The notes: generated from the letters alone by a model not told the origin. DNA of 64,000 nucleotides from IMGVR_UViG_3300035698_010479:62001-126000; one strand, 5' to 3'. Numbered from the stretch's first letter, positions 163-44,046 are shown. Made by a program: numbers and translations.

Positions 163-912
163 ATGCACTCACCGTTAAAATACTGTACTAAGGGTGTACC
201 ACTACCAAATTATTTAATTGACGGACCAGAGCGTGTTTTAAACGTTTCTGAAGCTAATGTGGAAGTAGTTTACGGAGGTGATGGTTCAGTACTTCGTGGA
301 GTACAAGGTATAGTAAAGAACAATGTACCAGACGTTCTAATACTTGGTATTAATACTGGACACGTTGGCTTCTTATCAAACGATATTAGTAAAGAACAAG
401 CATTAGCTTTCCTTACCAATCCTAATGAGGCCCTTATTGAGAAGCGTAATATGTTACGTATAAGCAATAATGATACTGTATGGTATGCACTTAATGAAAT
501 AGTAATTCAACCACTAAAAAGAGGACCATTATTTGAAACGCTGCTTAAAGTTGACAATGATGATTTAGTATATAAGGGAGATGGCTTGATAATTTCTACT
601 CCTTCTGGTAGTACTGCTTATAATCTATCTGCTGGAGGACCTATTATACATCCAAGTACCAACGTGCTTGGTATTACACCTATATGCCCATTTTCTCTCG
701 CTGCACGGCCTATTGTAGTACCGAATTCTGTAAAACTTCTTGTTAATACTTCTGCCGATGCTGAAATAACTATAGATGGTGTATCAGTGTTCGTTGGAGT
801 ACTAAAGAATATGTCGATAGATCTTGCAGCATTTACTATAAATTTAGTTAAGTTTGACTCGTTTTTTGAGGCAATACATAATAAACTTGGGTGGAACTAC
901 TCTATACGGTGA
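163..912 (+). CDS. nadK: NAD kinase
   Basis: GGDG, GINTGHVGFL, NE and GDGLIISTPSGSTAYNLSAGGP motifs of the NAD kinase family. Confidence 0.93.
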   Translation: MHSPLKYCTKGVPLPNYLIDGPERVLNVSEANVEVVYGGDGSVLRGVQGIVKNNVPDVLILGINTGHVGFLSNDISKEQALAFLTNPNEALIEKRNMLRISNNDTVWYALNEIVIQPLKRGPLFETLLKVDNDDLVYKGDGLIISTPSGSTAYNLSAGGPIIHPSTNVLGITPICPFSLAARPIVVPNSVKLLVNTSADAEITIDGVSVFVGVLKNMSIDLAAFTINLVKFDSFFEAIHNKLGWNYSIR

Positions 913-917
913 CTAGT

Positions 918-1373
918 ATGATACAACTTATAAACGAAGATATTCTTGGTAACTTAGATACAAATAAACAAAAAACAATTATTCTTCATGGGTGTAATTG
1001 TTTCCACACAATGGGTTCTGGTATTGCTAAATACTTAAGAGCCAAATTTCCAAAGGTTTACACAGTAGATATTACTACTACTAAACGTGGTGATAAATCA
1101 AAGCTTGGTACTTTTAGTACAGCAATCATTGAGGATAGATTTGTAATACTTAATTGTTATACACAATTCAGATATGGTAGAGATAACATCCTGTATGCTA
1201 ACTATGCAGCTATAGAAAAATGTTTTAGACAGGTGGCTTTGCAGTATGATAATTCATGGGAAGTACGGCTTCCAAAAATAGGGTGCGGATTGGCAGGTGG
1301 TGATTGGAATATTGTAGGGCCATTGTTGATGATGCATTTAAACAATCATAGTACTAAAGTTTATTATAAGTAA
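918..1373 (+). CDS. Macrodomain (ADP-ribose processing) protein, phage Tk.4-like
   Basis: HGCNCFHTMGSGIAKYL and PKIGCGLAGGDW motifs; likely start ATG 918 rather than 891. Confidence 0.88.
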   Translation: MIQLINEDILGNLDTNKQKTIILHGCNCFHTMGSGIAKYLRAKFPKVYTVDITTTKRGDKSKLGTFSTAIIEDRFVILNCYTQFRYGRDNILYANYAAIEKCFRQVALQYDNSWEVRLPKIGCGLAGGDWNIVGPLLMMHLNNHSTKVYYK

Positions 1374-1959: not shown

Positions 1960-2748
1960 ATGCTAAAAGAAATAAAAAAGAAGTCTTTTGCTAATGGTTG
2001 TGTATATTTAATGCACACAAAGGACGGCTACCCTATAGAAGTTACTGATACATTCCTACCTTTTTATACTAAAAATGCTATAGGTGTACATCAAAATTAT
2101 CTAAAAAATGATGATTTAGGAAGTAGAAAAGAGCGTTGGATGGTAGGTGTGTCTACAATGAGTGGTTGTCCAGTCGGTTGTAAGTTCTGTGCCACTGGTA
2201 CTATGAAAAAATGCAGGAACCTTACAGCGGAAGAAATTGTCGAGCAAGTTCAGTTTATTTGGGATAAGAACTTAGGCACATGGGTAGATGGCGCTCAAGA
2301 ATTTAAGATCAATTATACCCGCATGGGTGAACCTTTTTTAAACCTGGTCGAAGTAAAAAAGGCTATCAGTGTACTTTCCGAATACAACCCTAAAATACAT
2401 CATTATGTGTCAACTATTGGTGTTAAAGGGTCAGATTTTTCATGGATTAAGGGCAACATAACACTACAATTTTCTATTCATTCGTTTAAAGAAGAATACA
2501 GAGATTGGCTTATACCTTATAAACATAAAATGTCTTTGGAAGAGATTGGAAAAGTTAGGACTGGTAGTAATCTTAAAACTACACTCAATCTTACTTTGGC
2601 CCGCCCAGAAGATTTCGATATTGGCGTTCTTAAAAAGTATTTTGATCCTGATTATTTTTTTATAAAAATTTCCCCTATTAATACTAATGAAGTATCAGAA
2701 AGTAATGGTATGGGTAGTGGTATTATAAGTCAACATAATTTAATATAA
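1960..2748 (+). CDS. RlmN/Cfr-like radical SAM protein, core part lacking the C-terminal Cys segment
   Basis: STMSGCPVGCKFCAT (CxxxCxxC), RNLTAEEIVEQV, MGEP, STIG, SIH and KISPIN align with the RlmN core; ends before the xACGQL motif. Confidence 0.88.
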   Translation: MLKEIKKKSFANGCVYLMHTKDGYPIEVTDTFLPFYTKNAIGVHQNYLKNDDLGSRKERWMVGVSTMSGCPVGCKFCATGTMKKCRNLTAEEIVEQVQFIWDKNLGTWVDGAQEFKINYTRMGEPFLNLVEVKKAISVLSEYNPKIHHYVSTIGVKGSDFSWIKGNITLQFSIHSFKEEYRDWLIPYKHKMSLEEIGKVRTGSNLKTTLNLTLARPEDFDIGVLKKYFDPDYFFIKISPINTNEVSESNGMGSGIISQHNLI

Positions 2749-2762
2749 TAGGAGTTTACAAT

Positions 2763-3050
2763 ATGGCTATAAATATCGCAGCTGAGGTAGCTTTGCTTAA
2801 GAAGTTAAAACAAAGATTTGTTAATACTGACGCGTATCTAGAGTCAATTCAGGATATGTACGAGGAAGGTCTAATAACAGCTAAAGCATTCAGAGAAATA
2901 ATAAACGAATTAGCTAAACCAAAAATAACAAAGGGTAAATCAAATAGATTGGTACCTCAAAAAGTACTTAAATCTATAATCACAAAACAAACTGGTGTAC
3001 AGGAAATAGATCCATGTTCTCATGGTAACTTCACAAGAACATCATGTTAA
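2763..3050 (+). CDS. small protein ending in a Cx9C tail (possible radical SAM substrate or partner)
   Basis: 95 aa, SD AGGAG, C-terminus DPCSHGNFTRTSC; overlaps the next radical SAM gene. Confidence 0.7.
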   Translation: MAINIAAEVALLKKLKQRFVNTDAYLESIQDMYEEGLITAKAFREIINELAKPKITKGKSNRLVPQKVLKSIITKQTGVQEIDPCSHGNFTRTSC

Positions 3051-3928
3051 ACATTTCATTTATAAATAAACTTAATTTTAGGGAAAACAGCTGTGTTTTA
3101 AACAACACTAATGCTGAAAAAATACCACATAAATATGTGAATATCTATGTAAAAATTACAAGTAAGTGTAATGCTGATTGTAGATTTTGTGTGTATTGTA
3201 CTGACTTTAATAACAAAAAAGAAGTATTCAACTTCGTAAAGTTTGAAAAAATTCTTTTATATCTTGAAGCCAATAATATACACATACATAAGATATCTTT
3301 TACCGGAGGTGAACCATCACTATATTGTAAGAGTATTGAAAAATGTATGGTAAGTGTATTAAAATTGAAATATAAACCATTCATTGTTGTAAATTCTAAC
3401 GGTTTCAAGTTGGGCTTGTTACAAAAAATAAAGGGTATAGACAATATATCTTTATCTAGACACACTATAACAGATGAAGACAACTTCAAGTTATACGACA
3501 CACGCTCAGTTGCTTCATCAAATGACATAAGTAACGCTCAGCCAAATAAAATACACTTGACATGTAACCTTATTAAAGGATTTATAGACTCAGAGGAACG
3601 TATCATTGACTATCTTGAAAAAGCAGCATCTCTAAATGTATATGATGTAGGATTTGTAAGCTTGATGAAGGTAAATACATTCTGTAAAACAAATCATGTG
3701 GATTTTAACGATATAATTTTTAAAAGAAAAGATATAGTGTGTAATAAAGAATGGTCTAATTCCGATGTATGCAGATGTAAAAACTTTCTATACTTACCCA
3801 GTAAGGGTAATAAAGTTGTAAAATTTTATTCACGTTATAGATGTAAGAATGATGTTGACTCTAAAAGTAATTATGTATTTGATGGTAGTCATTTTAGAAG
3901 TAATTTTGGTGGTACAATAATCTATTAG
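3044..3928 (+). CDS. radical SAM protein of unknown function
   Basis: KITSKCNADCRFC (CxxxCxxC), SFTGGEP, VNSNG; extra C-terminal Cys (CRC). Confidence 0.88.
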   Translation: MLNISFINKLNFRENSCVLNNTNAEKIPHKYVNIYVKITSKCNADCRFCVYCTDFNNKKEVFNFVKFEKILLYLEANNIHIHKISFTGGEPSLYCKSIEKCMVSVLKLKYKPFIVVNSNGFKLGLLQKIKGIDNISLSRHTITDEDNFKLYDTRSVASSNDISNAQPNKIHLTCNLIKGFIDSEERIIDYLEKAASLNVYDVGFVSLMKVNTFCKTNHVDFNDIIFKRKDIVCNKEWSNSDVCRCKNFLYLPSKGNKVVKFYSRYRCKNDVDSKSNYVFDGSHFRSNFGGTIIY

Positions 3929-3937
3929 GAGAATATT

Positions 3938-4132
3938 ATGTCAGAAGAAGTTAAAAAACAAACCAGTAATGGTAAATTAGTAACAAAAGAAGAGTATATC
4001 AAGGAAGTAAAAGAAGAACTGATAAAACTTCAACTACAAGAAGCTGGATATGATTATGCTGTAGCTATAGCCACTGATGCTGAGATAAAAGCAGGTGCTG
4101 CTTGTGGTCAATTAGCTATCATAAACGAGTAG
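3938..4132 (+). CDS. stand-alone C-terminal segment of an RlmN-like enzyme (AACGQL peptide)
   Basis: LQEAGYDYAVAIATDAEIKAGAACGQLA matches the RlmN C-terminal helix/strand/Cys loop (E. coli ...[12 protein letters not shown]); has its own SD (AGGAG) and ATG. Confidence 0.8.
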   Translation: MSEEVKKQTSNGKLVTKEEYIKEVKEELIKLQLQEAGYDYAVAIATDAEIKAGAACGQLAIINE

Positions 4133-4480: not shown

Positions 4481-5107
4481 ATGTTTAAATACCCAAAAAC
4501 GTATCACTTGACATGGTCGCCAGGAGTAACACATGACGATAAAATTATAAGTTCCTTAGATAACTTCATAGGTAAGCGTGTAATAGTGACCGAGAAATTA
4601 GATGGTGAATGTACTACTATCACAAAAGGAAATATACATGCCAGATCTATGGATTCAAAAGACCACGTGTCCAGACATTGGGTTAAAAGTCAATACGGAT
4701 ATTTGACTTACGCATTGAGAGAGCCTATTAAAATATGTGGTGAGAACGTGTTTGCTAAACATTCAATTGCATATGATAATCTAATTGGCTTCTTTTACGC
4801 TTTCTCTTTATGGGATGGTACTAAGTGCTTATCGTGGGATGACACGCTTGCAGAACTTGCTTTTCTTAATATACCACATGTACCAGTAATATATGATGGG
4901 CTGTGGGATGAATCGTATATAAGACATATTCCTCTTTTAAATACTGAGAAAGGTATTATGGAAGGGTATGTTGTTAGGTTGGCGGATGAATTTGAACTTA
5001 TTGAATTTAGTAACAGTGTGGCAAAATATGTAAGACCTAACCACGTGCAGACAGACGAACACTGGTTATACCAACCTATTATTAAAAATAAATTAATAGG
5101 AGATTAG
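4481..5107 (+). CDS. RNA ligase family nucleotidyltransferase
   Basis: KYPKTYHLTWSPG, motif I TEKLDGE, ICGEN, EGYVVR, VAKYVR. Confidence 0.85.
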   Translation: MFKYPKTYHLTWSPGVTHDDKIISSLDNFIGKRVIVTEKLDGECTTITKGNIHARSMDSKDHVSRHWVKSQYGYLTYALREPIKICGENVFAKHSIAYDNLIGFFYAFSLWDGTKCLSWDDTLAELAFLNIPHVPVIYDGLWDESYIRHIPLLNTEKGIMEGYVVRLADEFELIEFSNSVAKYVRPNHVQTDEHWLYQPIIKNKLIGD

Positions 5108-5331
5108 TGAAAAATACTGGGTACGTATATGAAGATTTTCATGACGTTGTTATAGAGGTACTTCTTTCTAGAAATACTATAAACAAAGAATATTTAACAG
5201 ACGATTTTGTCAGAGAAGTATATAATAAACTACCAAAAGATATAAAAGCTACTGCTATAACATGGGGTTGTTCTGACACAGTGTTTAGAGATAATGCTTT
5301 CACCTGGTTAAAAGAAAATTGGAGAAATTAA
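5107..5331 (+). CDS. hypothetical protein
   Basis: 74-aa ORF, GTG start coupled to the upstream stop, SD AGGAG. Confidence 0.65.
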   Translation: MKNTGYVYEDFHDVVIEVLLSRNTINKEYLTDDFVREVYNKLPKDIKATAITWGCSDTVFRDNAFTWLKENWRN

Positions 5332-6474
5332 ATGGAAAGACAGTTAGCATCTATACAAAAAATAGTAGATATACAACCAATAGTTGGTGCTGATAAAATT
5401 GAAGTTGTGTTTATTCTAGGCTGGCAGTGTGTTGCAAAGAAGAACGAGTTTAAAATTGGTGATCTCTGTGTATATTTTGAAATAGACTCCCAGTTACCAA
5501 AGCATATTATATTTGATTTTATGGCACATAGAAAATTCAGAGTCAAAACAATCAAGCTTAGAAAACAAATATCACAAGGATTAGCATTACCACTGTCGAT
5601 TCTATCTAATTTTACAAATAAAAATATAAATTCTTTCCGTGAAGGGGATGATGTATCAGAATTAATAGGTGTTACTAAATATGACCCTAGGCCACAGGAT
5701 GCTGACCCAGTTAGTACTAAAAAGCATAATCCTATTGTTAATTATTTAATGGATTACTTCTGGTTTAGGAAAGTATATAACCTTGTTATGCCTAAAAAAA
5801 CTAAAGGCAACTTTCCAGAATTCATTAAAAAAACTGATGAGACTCGTTTACAAAGTTATCCATTAGTGCTCGTAAAAAATATAGGAAGAAAGTTCTATCT
5901 TACCGAGAAATTGGATGGTAGTTCTGCGTCTTATTTTTTTAATAAAGCACTTGTTGGTAAAAGGTTTGGATTGTTTCCTATCGACAAGGGTAATGGCTTT
6001 GGCGTATGTTCTAGAAATATAAGACTTGTCACACAAGATAAAAGATATTGGTGGAAGTACGCTCTAGATAATAATATGGAAGAAAAAACTAGAACCATTT
6101 CTAAATGTTTAGACTGTAGTATCGCTATACAGGGTGAACTCGTTGGTCCTGGTATTCAGAAAAATAAATATTGTTTAACCGAACTGGACTTTTATTGTTT
6201 TAATTTATTCAATATAGACACAAATACATATTTATCTAAAGAGGATAAAGAAATTATCTGTGATCAGTTTAATATAAAACTTGTTCCTTGTGATGATACT
6301 ATCATCGAATTATCTACTGAGCATGATGTTGCATTTTTTGTTAACCTTTCAAAAAGGAAAAGTAAGCTAAATAAAAAGACCACTGCTGAAGGTATAGTAG
6401 CAAGGAGATTAACAGACGAAACGATAAGCTTTAAAGTAATAAATCCAGAATGGTTACTAAAAAATGATGAATAA
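5332..6474 (+). CDS. RNA ligase, DRB0094-like family
   Basis: N-terminal RQLASIQKIVDIQPIVGADKIEV domain, TEKLDGSS, IQGELVGPGIQKN, EGIV, SFKVIN. Confidence 0.9.
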   Translation: MERQLASIQKIVDIQPIVGADKIEVVFILGWQCVAKKNEFKIGDLCVYFEIDSQLPKHIIFDFMAHRKFRVKTIKLRKQISQGLALPLSILSNFTNKNINSFREGDDVSELIGVTKYDPRPQDADPVSTKKHNPIVNYLMDYFWFRKVYNLVMPKKTKGNFPEFIKKTDETRLQSYPLVLVKNIGRKFYLTEKLDGSSASYFFNKALVGKRFGLFPIDKGNGFGVCSRNIRLVTQDKRYWWKYALDNNMEEKTRTISKCLDCSIAIQGELVGPGIQKNKYCLTELDFYCFNLFNIDTNTYLSKEDKEIICDQFNIKLVPCDDTIIELSTEHDVAFFVNLSKRKSKLNKKTTAEGIVARRLTDETISFKVINPEWLLKNDE

Positions 6475-9636: not shown

Positions 9637-10578
9637 TTAAGAATCAAATAGGTAACTTAAACTTTGTTCATCATGTATACCTATTATTGCCTCTGCAAAT
9701 AAAGTAGCGGAGGATAATACTTCAATCTTTGTTGATAATTTTATAGATGTATTGTATATAGTATCTGTAACGTACAGTTTATCTATACTTGATCTCTCAA
9801 TATTACTTATAGCCTTGCCACTAAGTACAGGGTGGGTACAGTAACATTCAACAGATGCAGCACCATTATTTAGTAACACATTAGTAGCCTTTACTAATGT
9901 TCCACCAGAATCTACCATATCATCTGCGATTATACAGTGTTTATCTTTAACTTCACCTATCAAAAACATTTCTCCGATTTCAGATGGGCCTGTTCTCTGT
10001 TTGTATATCATTGCTACACTGCATCCTAATTTACCTGCATAACTTTTAGCAACTTTGATAGAACCAGCGTCTGGAGCGACTACGCATATACTATTCCCTG
10101 GATGATTGCTTTTTATATGAGGTACAAACACATTAAACATATGTAGGTTATCTACAGGTATATCAAAGAACCCAGATATTTGTGGACTATGTAATTCAGA
10201 CGTAAGTACTCTATCTGTGCCAGCAGTTTGTATGAGGTTGGCTACCACTTTTGCAGAAATAGGTACACGAGACATTACTTTTCTATCCTGCCTACTATAT
10301 GGATAGCAAGGTAACACTGTGGTAACTCTATAACAACTTGAACGTTTAAGGGCATCTAGTAGTAAAAATAACTCCATTAAATGTGTATCAGTTGTATTGC
10401 TTGCACCTTGAATTACAAACACATCCTTGTTACGTACATTTTCCTTTATTTCTACACGACATTCCCCATTACCGAATGTAGATGTTAACACACCTGTTAA
10501 TGGTACCCCTACTAAATTACTGATACTGTTTGCCAATGCTATATTGGCACTTCCAGAAATAATAGCTAATTCTTTCAT
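9637..10578 (-). CDS. prs: ribose-phosphate pyrophosphokinase
   Basis: FGNGE, YSRQDRK, LHSPQISGFFDIPVD, VAPDAG, DDMVDSGGT, THPVLS. Confidence 0.95.
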   Translation of the reverse strand: MKELAIISGSANIALANSISNLVGVPLTGVLTSTFGNGECRVEIKENVRNKDVFVIQGASNTTDTHLMELFLLLDALKRSSCYRVTTVLPCYPYSRQDRKVMSRVPISAKVVANLIQTAGTDRVLTSELHSPQISGFFDIPVDNLHMFNVFVPHIKSNHPGNSICVVAPDAGSIKVAKSYAGKLGCSVAMIYKQRTGPSEIGEMFLIGEVKDKHCIIADDMVDSGGTLVKATNVLLNNGAASVECYCTHPVLSGKAISNIERSSIDKLYVTDTIYNTSIKLSTKIEVLSSATLFAEAIIGIHDEQSLSYLFDS

Positions 10579-20220: not shown

Positions 20221-20246
20221 TATTATACTCCTTATATTAATATGTT

Positions 20247-20321
20247 TGTTCCTAGTGAGAATCGAACTCACAACGAAACGCAGGTTTAGAATCTGCCGCT
20301 CTACCACTGAGCTATAGGAAC
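20247..20321 (-). tRNA. amber suppressor tRNA (anticodon CUA)
   Basis: GTTCCTA-TA-GCTC AGTGGTA GAGC-G-GCAGA TTCTAAA CCTGC-GTTTCGTT-GTGAG TTCGATT CTCAC-TAGGAAC-A. Confidence 0.85.
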
Positions 20322-20323
20322 AT

Positions 20324-21941: not shown

Positions 21942-22559
21942 TTAATATTTTATAAGTACTACCGCCAGTACACCAGAGGAATCATATATATGATCCTTAT
22001 TTAAAACTGTTTGTAAAGTATAACCATATTTTTCAAATAAGTCAAGCCACCATTGCTTAGAATGTATTTGAATATGTGTTTTATCATTTTTACTTACGTC
22101 CAGTACAAAGTCTTCACCTTCTACGGCTGCTACCGGTATACGTACTATAAGCTGTGTTGCGTTTACTATATCACCAATAATAGTGTGTAGTGAAAAGGTA
22201 GGTATATGTTCGAGTACATCTAAAAATAGTAGTATATCAAATGGCCCAGAAACTAAATCTGGGTTATAATGATGTAATATACCTCCTAGATTATACTGGT
22301 CAATACCAAATTCTACAGCCCAATAACTTATATCAGTACCTTCACATAGTACATTACGGTTATTTAGTTCATATATTAAACCACCTGTAGCTGCCCCATA
22401 GTCCAGTACGCTTTTGTTCTTTAAGTAAGGAAGTAAATCATCTGCCAATCCTGAAAATTTCTTCTCTCTATAATCTTCATAATTACTTATGGTACTTCTC
22501 ACATAATAATTTTTGTCAAATAGCATACTATGACCTTTAAATAAATTTGGAGTGGCCAC
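21942..22559 (-). CDS. class I SAM-dependent methyltransferase
   Basis: VLDYGAATG, GTDIS, DVLEHI. Confidence 0.88.
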   Translation of the reverse strand: MATPNLFKGHSMLFDKNYYVRSTISNYEDYREKKFSGLADDLLPYLKNKSVLDYGAATGGLIYELNNRNVLCEGTDISYWAVEFGIDQYNLGGILHHYNPDLVSGPFDILLFLDVLEHIPTFSLHTIIGDIVNATQLIVRIPVAAVEGEDFVLDVSKNDKTHIQIHSKQWWLDLFEKYGYTLQTVLNKDHIYDSSGVLAVVLIKY

Positions 22560-23475
22560 ATGGCATAATTACTTGCTCAATAAGGTCATTGTGTTCATTG
22601 AAGAAACATTTACCTTCTTTACAGTTACAAGTATCAAAAGCGGTATCTTTTTTATATGTGTTCTCCCAAGTTTTAATTATATCATCAATATGACATAATG
22701 TAAAGTCAGAATTAAATTTTCTGTCAATTAGAGGGTTAGCACTACAATGATAGACATAGCCATCGGCATTAACAAATGGTTTTATTCTGCCCATCCAACA
22801 TTTATTTGGTACTGTATATTTCTTTTGTTGAAAAAAGAATTTTGGGTACTTATCTAAATAAGGTTGGATCATGTCTGTTGATTTATTTATGTCTTCAATA
22901 GATAGGCAATTAGGTACTATACGAACATAAGTAGCTTTATATTTATCTGCATATGCTGAAATTTTATCTAGCTGTTTTTCTGTTGATAAATCAGTAATTA
23001 CGTAAGAAAAACCTAAAACAACATTTGAAGGTATATTAATATCTATATCTTCAACGTAGTCTAAACTATTAAGACTTATTCTTAACCAAGTTAGTCTACT
23101 AAGATTTTTATAACTAACGTTATCTAGTTTTACACCATTAGTAATCATACCGATACCAGAGTAATTATAAGCAGCAAATTCTATAATATCATTAATGTGC
23201 TTATACATTGTTGGATCGCCTCCTCCGGTAAACTCAACAGTCTTTGCACCAAGAGTTTTAAAATCTGTAAGTACCTTGATAGACTGTTCTAAAGAAAGTT
23301 CATCAGCTTTATTTCGATTTGCTACAGAACACATTACGCAATTTAAATTACATTTATTAGTGGGGGCTAATTGAATACTGATAGGTCTAAAATAACCTTG
23401 CTGCATCTCCTTTAATCTATCCAGATTATGAAGTAATTTATTTTGTGTGCTTGTGTACAGCTGTTCTTTATTCAT
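22537..23475 (-). CDS. radical SAM protein with SPASM/twitch-like C-terminus
   Basis: CNLNCVMC, FTGGGDP, ITNG, CW...NADGYVYHC...CNCKEGKC. Confidence 0.9.
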   Translation of the reverse strand: MNKEQLYTSTQNKLLHNLDRLKEMQQGYFRPISIQLAPTNKCNLNCVMCSVANRNKADELSLEQSIKVLTDFKTLGAKTVEFTGGGDPTMYKHINDIIEFAAYNYSGIGMITNGVKLDNVSYKNLSRLTWLRISLNSLDYVEDIDINIPSNVVLGFSYVITDLSTEKQLDKISAYADKYKATYVRIVPNCLSIEDINKSTDMIQPYLDKYPKFFFQQKKYTVPNKCWMGRIKPFVNADGYVYHCSANPLIDRKFNSDFTLCHIDDIIKTWENTYKKDTAFDTCNCKEGKCFFNEHNDLIEQVIMPCGHSKFI

Positions 23476-40778: not shown

Positions 40779-41671
40779 CTAGTTATATTTTGTTAAAATT
40801 TTAGCTATTGCTTTTAAGTCCTTCTCTAAATCCGGTACGATATACACAGCCTTTCCAAGAGAACCATAATGTATTTCTAAACAATTTAGAAGAAGTTGTT
40901 TAATTTTAACCTCATCTGGTTTGGTTTGTAGAGTACTCTTAACATAAAGGTCTTCAAGTTGTTTTTCTTTTCTAAAAAAGAAATCTTCAATTTGGTCCAT
41001 AGTTAAATCGCCAGCCCTAACACTCTTCAACTGTTCTTTATTTTTTGAAGATCTAAATCATGTTCTACCAAGATCTGTTCTGCTTGCAAAATTAGTCTAA
41101 ATAAATGCATTGCGAATTTACTGTCGTAGGATAACTTTACATAAGAAGCGTATCTCTTACTTTCTGGTAGAGGTACCTTTGTACGTAACTTCTTTAACTG
41201 GCTGTACGAGTAAGCTATACATGTTTTATAAGCCTCTTTAGATAAAAATAGTTTACGCTGTTCCCTAATAATATCTGATATAGGTGTAGAATAAACTATA
41301 CACGTATCTGGACAAAAGAGTATGTCTAATAAATTAGGATTATTAGCAAAACATAAACTAAAGAACTTAACTATACCGTATGCAGTTAAGTCATATTCCT
41401 TATGCGAGTCTTTGTCTAAAATATGGTGCCTCTGCCAAGTAGTAAATTGTTTAGTTTGTGTGCCAAAACCCAATATCTCTGTTTTTAGGTGGGGAAATAC
41501 ATCTTCTTTATGGGGTATACAAATTGCTGCAACGTCTATATCAGAAGTACCTTCTTTCGCCACACCGTAACTTTCAGAACCAATAATAACTTCATATACC
41601 AAACCGTAATGTACCTCGCTGGGTAAAACCACTAAATTTTTTTTACTTAACATATTAAATCTGCTGGACAT
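40779..41671 (-). pseudogene. Pol-beta-type nucleotidyltransferase (T4 NrdC.11-like), interrupted by a -1 frameshift
   Basis: GSESYG...SDID, NNPNLLD, YDSKFAMHLFRL in 41027-41671; the continuation KSVRAG...KPDEVKIKQLL lies in another frame (40779-41030); one extra A in the A6 run (41041-41046) restores QKNKEQLKSVR. Confidence 0.75.
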
Positions 41672-42862: not shown

Positions 42863-43096
42863 TTAATCTCCTATATAAGAAAATTCACAACAAGGAAATT
42901 TTCTTCCTTGTTCATCTAAAGGTTCTTTCCAATTATCTAAATCTAGATTATCAGGATTACCGTCGGTTGGCTCCATATTACAACTACATCCTCTTGGTAC
43001 ACATATATCGCAATAGAAATCATTTATCTGCTCACCAGAGTAACTTGGTAAATATAACCATACAGCTACTTTACCACAATCACATTTACCTGTCAT
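42863..43096 (-). CDS. Cys-rich small protein
   Basis: CDCG, CDIC, GCSC, PCC. Confidence 0.7.
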   Translation of the reverse strand: MTGKCDCGKVAVWLYLPSYSGEQINDFYCDICVPRGCSCNMEPTDGNPDNLDLDNWKEPLDEQGRKFPCCEFSYIGD

Positions 43097-44046
43097 TATT
43101 TATTTAATACCCTAGATAAAATAAATTGACCACAAGCTGACATAATTTCCTCTCCTGGTGAAAATTGTACTTTTATGTTTTTGTGCTTATCATATAAAAG
43201 TTCCACCAACTTAGCAAAATTCTTAGCTTCTTCAAAACTTGTACCTTCGCATTTATTAAATCTAAGTAAACGTAACTCAATATTATTAAATACTGTTAGT
43301 AAACTTAATAAGTAATTTATATCATTTATGGAGTCGTTAACACCATCAAAAAACATATGATGTAGTATAACATCAATACCATCTTGTTCTAAATACTTAA
43401 GGTAGTCTATGGCAGTAAATGTATCAACAGAACTAGGAATCAATGTGTTCCTTATAGAATCTTCTGCACTGTGCAGGGAGTAAAATACCCTAAATGGTTG
43501 TCTTTTACTCCCCTTTGTATACTTTCTAGCTGGGTTTAAATGTGTTGTCCATACACACTCAGAAAGTAACTTAATATAATCTATATCAGTATTTGGAATT
43601 TTAGGTAATGTCGTAGCAATGTCTACCCCATCTATACCAGCAGACATATCAAAACTCTGTATACACTGTATAATATCTTCCGTAACTTCATACACAAGTT
43701 CAAGGTCTAAAAAGCCATCTCCCATACCCATCCAAGATAATTTAGTGTACATGCTTCGTAATTCAGGCCTAATCTTTAACTCAGCATCAAGTGCATCTAG
43801 CACGTTTCTAGTAATAGCCATAGCAGACAGTTTATGGTAATGGCATTTTTTAACTGTTAGATAACAGAACTTGCAACCTATAGGACAACCTACGGATGTA
43901 CTTATAAAAATATTATATTTATTACCTACACTTCCGTAACCTCCACAGCCAACTTCTCCTGGTGGTATGGTCTTTATAGCCGTTTCAGAACCATCATCGT
44001 GTACATATTTTGATACGTGTCCATTTTTAGCTCTATACACCTCCAT
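43096..44046 (-). CDS. RlmN/Cfr-like radical SAM protein (full length)
   Basis: ISTSVGCPIGCKFC, WMGMGD, YSLHS, GVND, FNK, GEEIMSACGQF. Confidence 0.88.
   Translation of the reverse strand: MEVYRAKNGHVSKYVHDDGSETAIKTIPPGEVGCGGYGSVGNKYNIFISTSVGCPIGCKFCYLTVKKCHYHKLSAMAITRNVLDALDAELKIRPELRSMYTKLSWMGMGDGFLDLELVYEVTEDIIQCIQSFDMSAGIDGVDIATTLPKIPNTDIDYIKLLSECVWTTHLNPARKYTKGSKRQPFRVFYSLHSAEDSIRNTLIPSSVDTFTAIDYLKYLEQDGIDVILHHMFFDGVNDSINDINYLLSLLTVFNNIELRLLRFNKCEGTSFEEAKNFAKLVELLYDKHKNIKVQFSPGEEIMSACGQFILSRVLNK

Follow-up and report, generated by a model that had tools for sequence, protein, structure and literature searches.

A two-piece RlmN-like radical SAM enzyme of phages, predicted from a body that lacks the second catalytic cysteine and a separate peptide that carries the methyl-carrier cysteine

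The 64,000-nucleotide stretch of DNA analysed here (the window; IMGVR_UViG_3300035698_010479:62001-126000) lies in a 228-kb jumbo phage record that is 86% complete by CheckV's estimate and comes from salt-lake metagenomes; the locus was found only in salt-lake DNA runs, and no RNA run holds it. Near its start the window encodes a radical SAM protein related to RlmN and Cfr together with a separate small peptide, and the features that concern us are as follows.

1960..2748 (+), body of the RlmN/Cfr-like radical SAM enzyme, 262 aa, without the RlmN N-terminal domain and the C-terminal Cys loop
2146..2148 (+), codon of Gly63, at the position of RlmN C118 / Cfr C105
2167..2190 (+), CX3CX2C radical SAM cluster motif (C70, C74, C77)
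2763..3050 (+), accessory 95-aa protein ending DPCSHGNFTRTSC, with no family hit in any library searched
3044..3928 (+), accessory MoaA-like radical SAM enzyme (rsam2), 294 aa, between the body and peptide genes
3938..4132 (+), 64-aa Cys-loop peptide, the detached C-terminal module of the RlmN fold (helix, GYDYAVAIAT strand, GAAC56GQL loop), with the Cys56 codon at 4103-4105
43096..44046 (-), second RlmN-like paralogue of the same phage, 316 aa, with Phe at the C118 position and the tail cysteine in cis (SACGQF)

The nearest relatives of the body by sequence and by fold are RlmN and Cfr. Pfam detects only Radical_SAM, so that RlmN_N, the N-terminal helical domain used for RNA recognition, is absent, and the body starts at about RlmN residue 90. 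The best NCBIfam model is RlmN (TIGR00048, E 4.8e-20), but the match covers only profile positions 101-244 of 355 and scores 71.8 bits against a cut-off of 290, while the Cfr models (TIGR04432 among the class A families) give 52-56 bits against cut-offs of 468-550. The best sequence hits among solved structures are Cfr (9p0p, E 5e-10) and RlmN (4pl1, 5hr6, 3rf9). An AlphaFold2 model of the body (pLDDT 91.8) finds RlmN or Cfr as its top 11 Foldseek matches in the PDB (E 1.8e-12 to 1.3e-7), with the next fold, TYW1, at 7e-5. The SAM motifs TRMGEP, STIG, SIHS and SPIN are kept.

A sequence-only reading of the body had observed that the residue equivalent to the resolving cysteine of RlmN is missing, and this observation is correct. 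The ORF reads ...ERWMVGVSTMSGC70PVGC74KFC77ATG, and HMMER alignments to E. coli RlmN (4pl1, the C118A variant) and to Cfr (9p0p) place Gly63 (MVG63VSTMSGC70) on RlmN C118 / Cfr C105, and hhalign against a full-length Klebsiella RlmN gives the same register. The glycine is a family trait rather than chance or a sequencing error: it is present in all 120 closest database homologues, in all 16 split-type rows of a cross-clade alignment that include the cluster representatives and four phage cores, and in 44 of 47 cores detected among 49 genome loci, the other three being unsplit relatives with Thr. A check named beforehand was whether another cysteine takes over the resolving role, and at the family level none does. 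Across diverse cores, including those of Bacteroides, Moorella, Yersinia and Vibrio phages, the only invariant cysteines are C70, C74 and C77; C14 and C85 of the window protein are not conserved, and the peptide has no further conserved cysteine. Glu27 was considered as a clade-specific replacement base and rejected, because classical RlmN has a Glu in the same hairpin and the apparent difference is probably an alignment shift.

The methyl-carrier cysteine of RlmN (C355; C338 in Cfr) is likewise absent from the body, which stops just after the SPIN strand that corresponds to NLIPFNP of RlmN, and the C355-type loop is carried by the separate 64-aa gene product, which ends ...LQEAGYDYAVAIATDAEIKAGAAC56GQLAIINE. 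A profile of such peptides was too short to retrieve RlmN from PDB sequences, but pairwise hhalign aligns it with RlmN residues 333-364, including AACGQLA. In P0193, an unsplit 347-aa relative inside the same clade (here P numbers denote proteins and L numbers loci), residues 5-273 match the body (E 1e-32) and residues 287-316 match the peptide (probability 92.6%, E 4.7e-7); the peptide is therefore the detached C-terminus. JGI's pipeline independently names several such peptides RlmN. A complex model of body, 4Fe-4S, SAM and peptide scores ipSAE 0.87, 0.88 and 0.87, against 0.00 for three controls, a mark reached in the method's calibration by 58 of 80 solved complexes and 2 of 110 mismatched pairs, although such a pass may partly reflect memory of the RlmN fold by the model. 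The predicted interface includes body residues 76-82 and 120, next to the cluster and SAM motifs, and peptide residues 36-63.

The two genes co-occur almost without exception. A scan of IMG/VR with the single protein found nothing, but an alignment query retrieved 84 viral loci, and in 83 of these the peptide gene lies downstream of the body. We define the two-gene system as a body with Gly at the C118 position followed on the same strand by a 39-68 aa gene carrying G[YF]D[YF]A.A.AT..E...GAACGQ, an arrangement present in the window, in 42 of 44 Gly-type loci of species-representative genomes, and in eight isolated phages of five host genera. Both families are large and similar in size, with 2512 bodies (at least 2500 non-redundant) and at least 2816 peptides. 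In the best 120 peptides the median length is 42 aa, 114 have a single cysteine, and about 30 residues are almost invariant. The group is mostly from phages and spans crAss-like gut phages, jumbo phages, and phages of Moorella, Yersinia, Vibrio and Pectobacterium; cultivable carriers include Kehishuvirus 'tikkala' on Bacteroides cellulosilyticus, Yersinia phage P778 and Pectobacterium phage Arno18.

The junction between the two genes is variable. In many loci they are adjacent, whereas a MoaA-like radical SAM gene lies between them in about a third to 40% of loci (10 of 27 dereplicated viral loci and 18 of 44 genome loci). One type of cassette, which we call A and which includes the window, has a small protein plus rsam2 and occurs in 10 of 27 dereplicated viral loci; the other, B, has a 243-255 aa MoaA-like radical SAM plus a 148-aa class I methyltransferase and occurs in 17 of 44 genome loci. 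The rsam2 protein has four further invariant cysteines (C17, C174, C243, C245) and NCBIfam hits to MoaA and viperin, and its AlphaFold2 model (pLDDT 85.6) matches MoaA over the full length at E 1.5e-10, against 7e-7 for the next fold. The small proteins that accompany it have no family hit, usually end DPC-x(8-13)-C (window 2763-3050 (+); L006 6800-7105; L011 7019-7291; L078 6796-7128; L076 8335-8709), show two or three such Cys pairs in L041, and could be a peptide substrate or a carrier. PADLOC gave no defence-family hit for the body, the peptide or the paralogue, and only a weak viperin-like hit for rsam2. Another radical SAM plus methyltransferase pair of the window, in which a fourth radical SAM gene (312 aa, 22537-23475) overlaps the start of a Methyltransf_23 gene (21942-22559) on the minus strand close to the tRNA cluster, is not homologous to the B-type pair.

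The cysteine module is also found fused to large enzymes of 330-695 aa, in at least three separate arrangements. It is joined to the body (P0193, P0252, L147-149), to the C-terminus of the MoaA-like enzyme in L006, where rsam2 and the peptide form one ORF, and to the N-terminus of a body-plus-second-radical-SAM protein. The last of these, P0134 (695 aa; locus L100 67-2154), is a circularly permuted triple fusion with the Cys module (LGYEFYISTISANEKHVGAACGNLA) at its N-terminus, then the RlmN-like body with Asp at the C118 position, then another radical SAM domain. In the window the TAG stop of rsam2 (3926-3928) is in frame with the peptide nine bases downstream (3938), and the phage encodes a tRNA with a CTA anticodon at 20246-20322 (-), an amber suppressor that ARAGORN labels Pyl, so that read-through would reproduce the natural fusion of L006. 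TAG ends 14 of 76 long frames in the window. Only the window has the in-frame TAG, however, and other loci use TAA or are out of frame; read-through was therefore dropped as a general feature.

Mobile elements target the system: a Hint/LAGLIDADG intein sits right after the CX3CX2C motif of one body (P0122), a GIY-YIG endonuclease gene lies between the body and peptide genes in L007 (6792-7607), and GIY-YIG genes also lie just upstream of the body in L057 and L061 and further upstream in L078. This insertion hot spot, with variable cargo elsewhere, would suit an ordinary m2A or m8A RNA methyltransferase that was cut by mobile-element insertion, still methylates host or phage tRNA or rRNA, and relies on a host thiol (thioredoxin or a low-molecular-weight thiol) to do the job of C118 in trans. 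The phage carries seven tRNA genes, and classical phage mini-RlmNs of 310-320 aa (L086 2393-3352; L087 2390-3319; L088 2399-3325) keep both cysteines but lack the N-terminal domain; in Stenotrophomonas phage ANB28 the gene lies among tRNA genes, and in Vibrio phage 496E54-1 it lies beside nicotinate phosphoribosyltransferase-family and PRPP synthetase genes. We consider this explanation unlikely, because the RNA-binding N-terminal domain is absent, no thioredoxin or glutaredoxin was found in the 86%-complete phage record, Gly63 is invariant rather than drifting, and the split is ancient and stable across phages of Bacteroidota, Firmicutes, Proteobacteria and others.

To place the missing cysteine in context, we classified 88 full-length cluster representatives and reference sequences and built a tree. 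A branch with 98/90 support separates every C118-bearing sequence, comprising true RlmN and the phage mini-RlmNs with both cysteines, from 61 sequences without C118. The C118-less side has three parts: a clade of single-chain enzymes with the CGQ tail in cis, a clade with neither cysteine, and the split clade, which contains two unsplit members. The paralogue at 43096-44046 (-), which was found by TIGR00048 matches and whose NCBIfam match covers profile positions 219-343, sits on a very long branch, and its placement is unsure. In the cis-tail group the only invariant cysteines are the cluster trio and the tail cysteine. Three members that were looked up, all of bacterial type, sit with an isochorismatase and/or a TrxR-like flavoprotein, two in a three-gene operon and one as a direct flavoprotein fusion. 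This bacterial unit (L097 149-2603; L098 3510-5936; P0236, P0179, P0231, P0248), with fusions in both directions, looks like an uncharacterised pathway. The flavoprotein lacks a redox-active CxxC, and there is no support for a thiol that resolves the adduct. R121, K206 and K236 are specific to the C118-less groups that keep the tail, which hints at an anionic substrate. Loss of C118 is therefore old and is not tied to the split.

The same tree bears on a reading in which the loop cysteine is not a methyl carrier in the C118-less superclade, but a hydrogen-atom donor or thiyl relay, as in radical SAM epimerases or spore photoproduct lyase, in non-methylating chemistry on a small molecule. The clade with neither cysteine (KIGVS...GC; P0172, P0180, P0267 and others; L092 2132-2971) ends right after the GF.YA strand yet keeps the radical SAM core, and is presumably a non-methylating offshoot of the fold, so the scaffold has left RlmN chemistry at least once; P0180 lies between pyruvate kinase and greA on a short contig. 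Also in its favour are the isochorismatase and flavoprotein neighbours of bacterial cis-tail members, and the clade-specific basic residues, which suggest a different, anionic substrate. In contrast, the CGQ loop, which is conserved in classical, cis-tail and split groups alike, and the Glu of the N-terminal hairpin are conserved exactly where the tail cysteine is kept, as in true methylases, and RlmN and Cfr remain the nearest relatives by three or more orders of magnitude in Foldseek E-value. We regard this reading as unlikely.

The sequence-only reading went on to infer that, with C355 on a small disposable peptide and no C118, the product could be a stable peptide-CH2-nucleic acid or peptide-protein conjugate rather than a methyl group, a new type of modification. 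In such a model each peptide would be used once and would stay linked through a methylene bridge to a base in RNA or DNA, to a nucleotide, or to a protein. This interpretation is only partly supported. The resolving position is indeed empty, the carrier cysteine is indeed on a separate small gene product, and the premise that C118 mutants stay cross-linked through C355 is accurate: C355 carries the methyl group, C118A traps the protein-RNA adduct, and in Cfr loss of C105 likewise gives a stable cross-link (PMC9692996). A separately translated small gene fits a consumable, and two rare peptides carry a tandem duplication of the Cys loop within one small ORF, with two full units in Vibrio phage D479 (L004 5737-6084) and two loops in P0272, which would be pointless for a structural subunit; P0271 duplicates the preceding strand segment rather than the Cys loop. 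These duplications also resemble multi-core RiPP precursors, whereas the peptide is almost invariant and homologous to an enzyme segment, which argues against a variable core peptide matured by a radical SAM enzyme. Nothing yet shows that stable cross-links are made. The loss of C118 is shared with single-chain enzymes, some in bacterial operons, that keep the tail cysteine in cis and that a stable cross-link would make suicidal; the fusions of the module, the mirroring of the RlmN structural motif in the conservation of the peptide and the large predicted interface fit a subunit or swinging arm better than a disposable peptide. Newer mechanistic work also sees C118 as a general base whose deprotonation of C2 or C8 triggers radical C-S fragmentation (PMC9692996), a role that another group could fill. 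The cross-link is therefore possible but not favoured. In its boldest form, which we likewise think improbable, the 40-64 aa peptide would be a covalent carrier or tag joined through an S-CH2 bridge to a purine carbon of a nucleotide or nucleic acid, the conjugate being either the end product, which would be a new peptide-nucleic acid modification, or a tethered intermediate on which, in the larger cassettes, the MoaA-like enzyme and the methyltransferase would work.

Our preferred reading, held with moderate confidence only, is that 1960-2748 and 3938-4132 together encode a two-piece, class-A-like methyl(ene) transferase. In this view the body holds the [4Fe-4S]/SAM site, and the peptide docks by strand complementation and puts C56 into the active site. 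One SAM would methylate C56, a second would be cleaved to the 5'-deoxyadenosyl radical that takes a hydrogen from the S-methyl group, and the resulting S-CH2 radical would add to an sp2 carbon of the substrate. Because loss of C118 predates the split and is shared with single-chain relatives, the adduct would then be released without a second cysteine, most likely by a non-cysteine base, for which no residue has been identified, or in the larger cassettes by the MoaA-like partner, freeing the peptide as a subunit or swinging arm. The substrate is probably not rRNA A2503 or tRNA A37 recognised as RlmN does, because the N-terminal domain is missing. A purine nucleotide, base or nucleic acid is our guess, based on the missing domain, the MoaA-like partners, the NUDIX, isochorismatase and PNP/QueT fusions of relatives, and the neighbouring NAD kinase, macro domain and PRPP synthetase genes. 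The latter belong to a set of nucleotide, NAD and RNA-repair genes typical of phage counter-defence regions (window 163-1373, 4481-6474, 9637-10578 (-), 41027-41671 (-)), which also includes two RNA ligases and an RlaP-type RNA-repair nucleotidyltransferase. Our analysis establishes the split architecture, the homology, the conservation, the co-occurrence and the fact that docking is predicted, whereas every chemical step, the catalytic activity itself and the substrate are inferred from sequence and models.

PHROGs lists the family of the body as unknown function, phage records mostly call it hypothetical, and the arrangement is apparently undescribed, since full-text literature searches found no account of it, although most subscription journals lay outside their reach and this is not proof of absence. 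RlmN and Cfr are the textbook case of radical methylation through a protein-bound methylene, and both need two cysteines; here a large group of proteins keeps the carrier cysteine, moves it onto its own 40-residue gene product and has discarded the second. How the adduct is resolved, or whether it is kept, bears on how essential C118 really is, could reveal a new substrate class for class-A-type chemistry, and would assign a function to a common phage gene pair now annotated as hypothetical, or wrongly as RlmN.

The closest known system is RlmN of E. coli (PDB 3RFA, 5HR7), the dual-specificity 23S rRNA A2503 / tRNA A37 C2-methyltransferase, which shares the radical SAM core with CX3CX2C, the SAM-binding motifs, the fold (Foldseek E about 1e-10) and the C-terminal helix-strand-AACGQL loop. 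The phage system is RlmN-like but fails four defining features of the RlmN/Cfr family, as the Cys loop is a separate gene product, C118 is replaced by an invariant Gly, the N-terminal helical domain is missing, and the score is 72 bits against 290. Cfr (PDB 9P0P), the 23S rRNA A2503 C8-methyltransferase, is the best PDB sequence hit and is presumed to share the core and the two-SAM ping-pong logic, but has both C105 and C338 in one chain where the body has neither, and we found no link to antibiotic resistance. The uncharacterised single-chain C118-less RlmN-like proteins (for example window 43096-44046, P0186, P0225) also lack C118 and the N-terminal domain, keep the CGQ tail cysteine and share R121, K206 and K236, but have the tail in cis, and many are bacterial and lie in an isochorismatase / flavoprotein operon. 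MoaA (GTP 3',8-cyclase) is the closest fold to rsam2, whose extra conserved cysteines would suit an auxiliary cluster; however, its sequence scores lie far below the MoaA cut-offs, no MoaC or other Moco-pathway gene was seen in the annotated neighbourhood, and it is paired with a small protein that ends in Cys. Phage genes in pieces created by homing-endonuclease insertion, such as the split NrdA of phage Aeh1, similarly encode one enzyme as two adjacent genes with mobile or foreign genes at the junction and pieces that are expected to reassemble, whereas here the split is ancient and nearly universal in the clade, and the small piece is only about 40 aa and carries the key catalytic residue.
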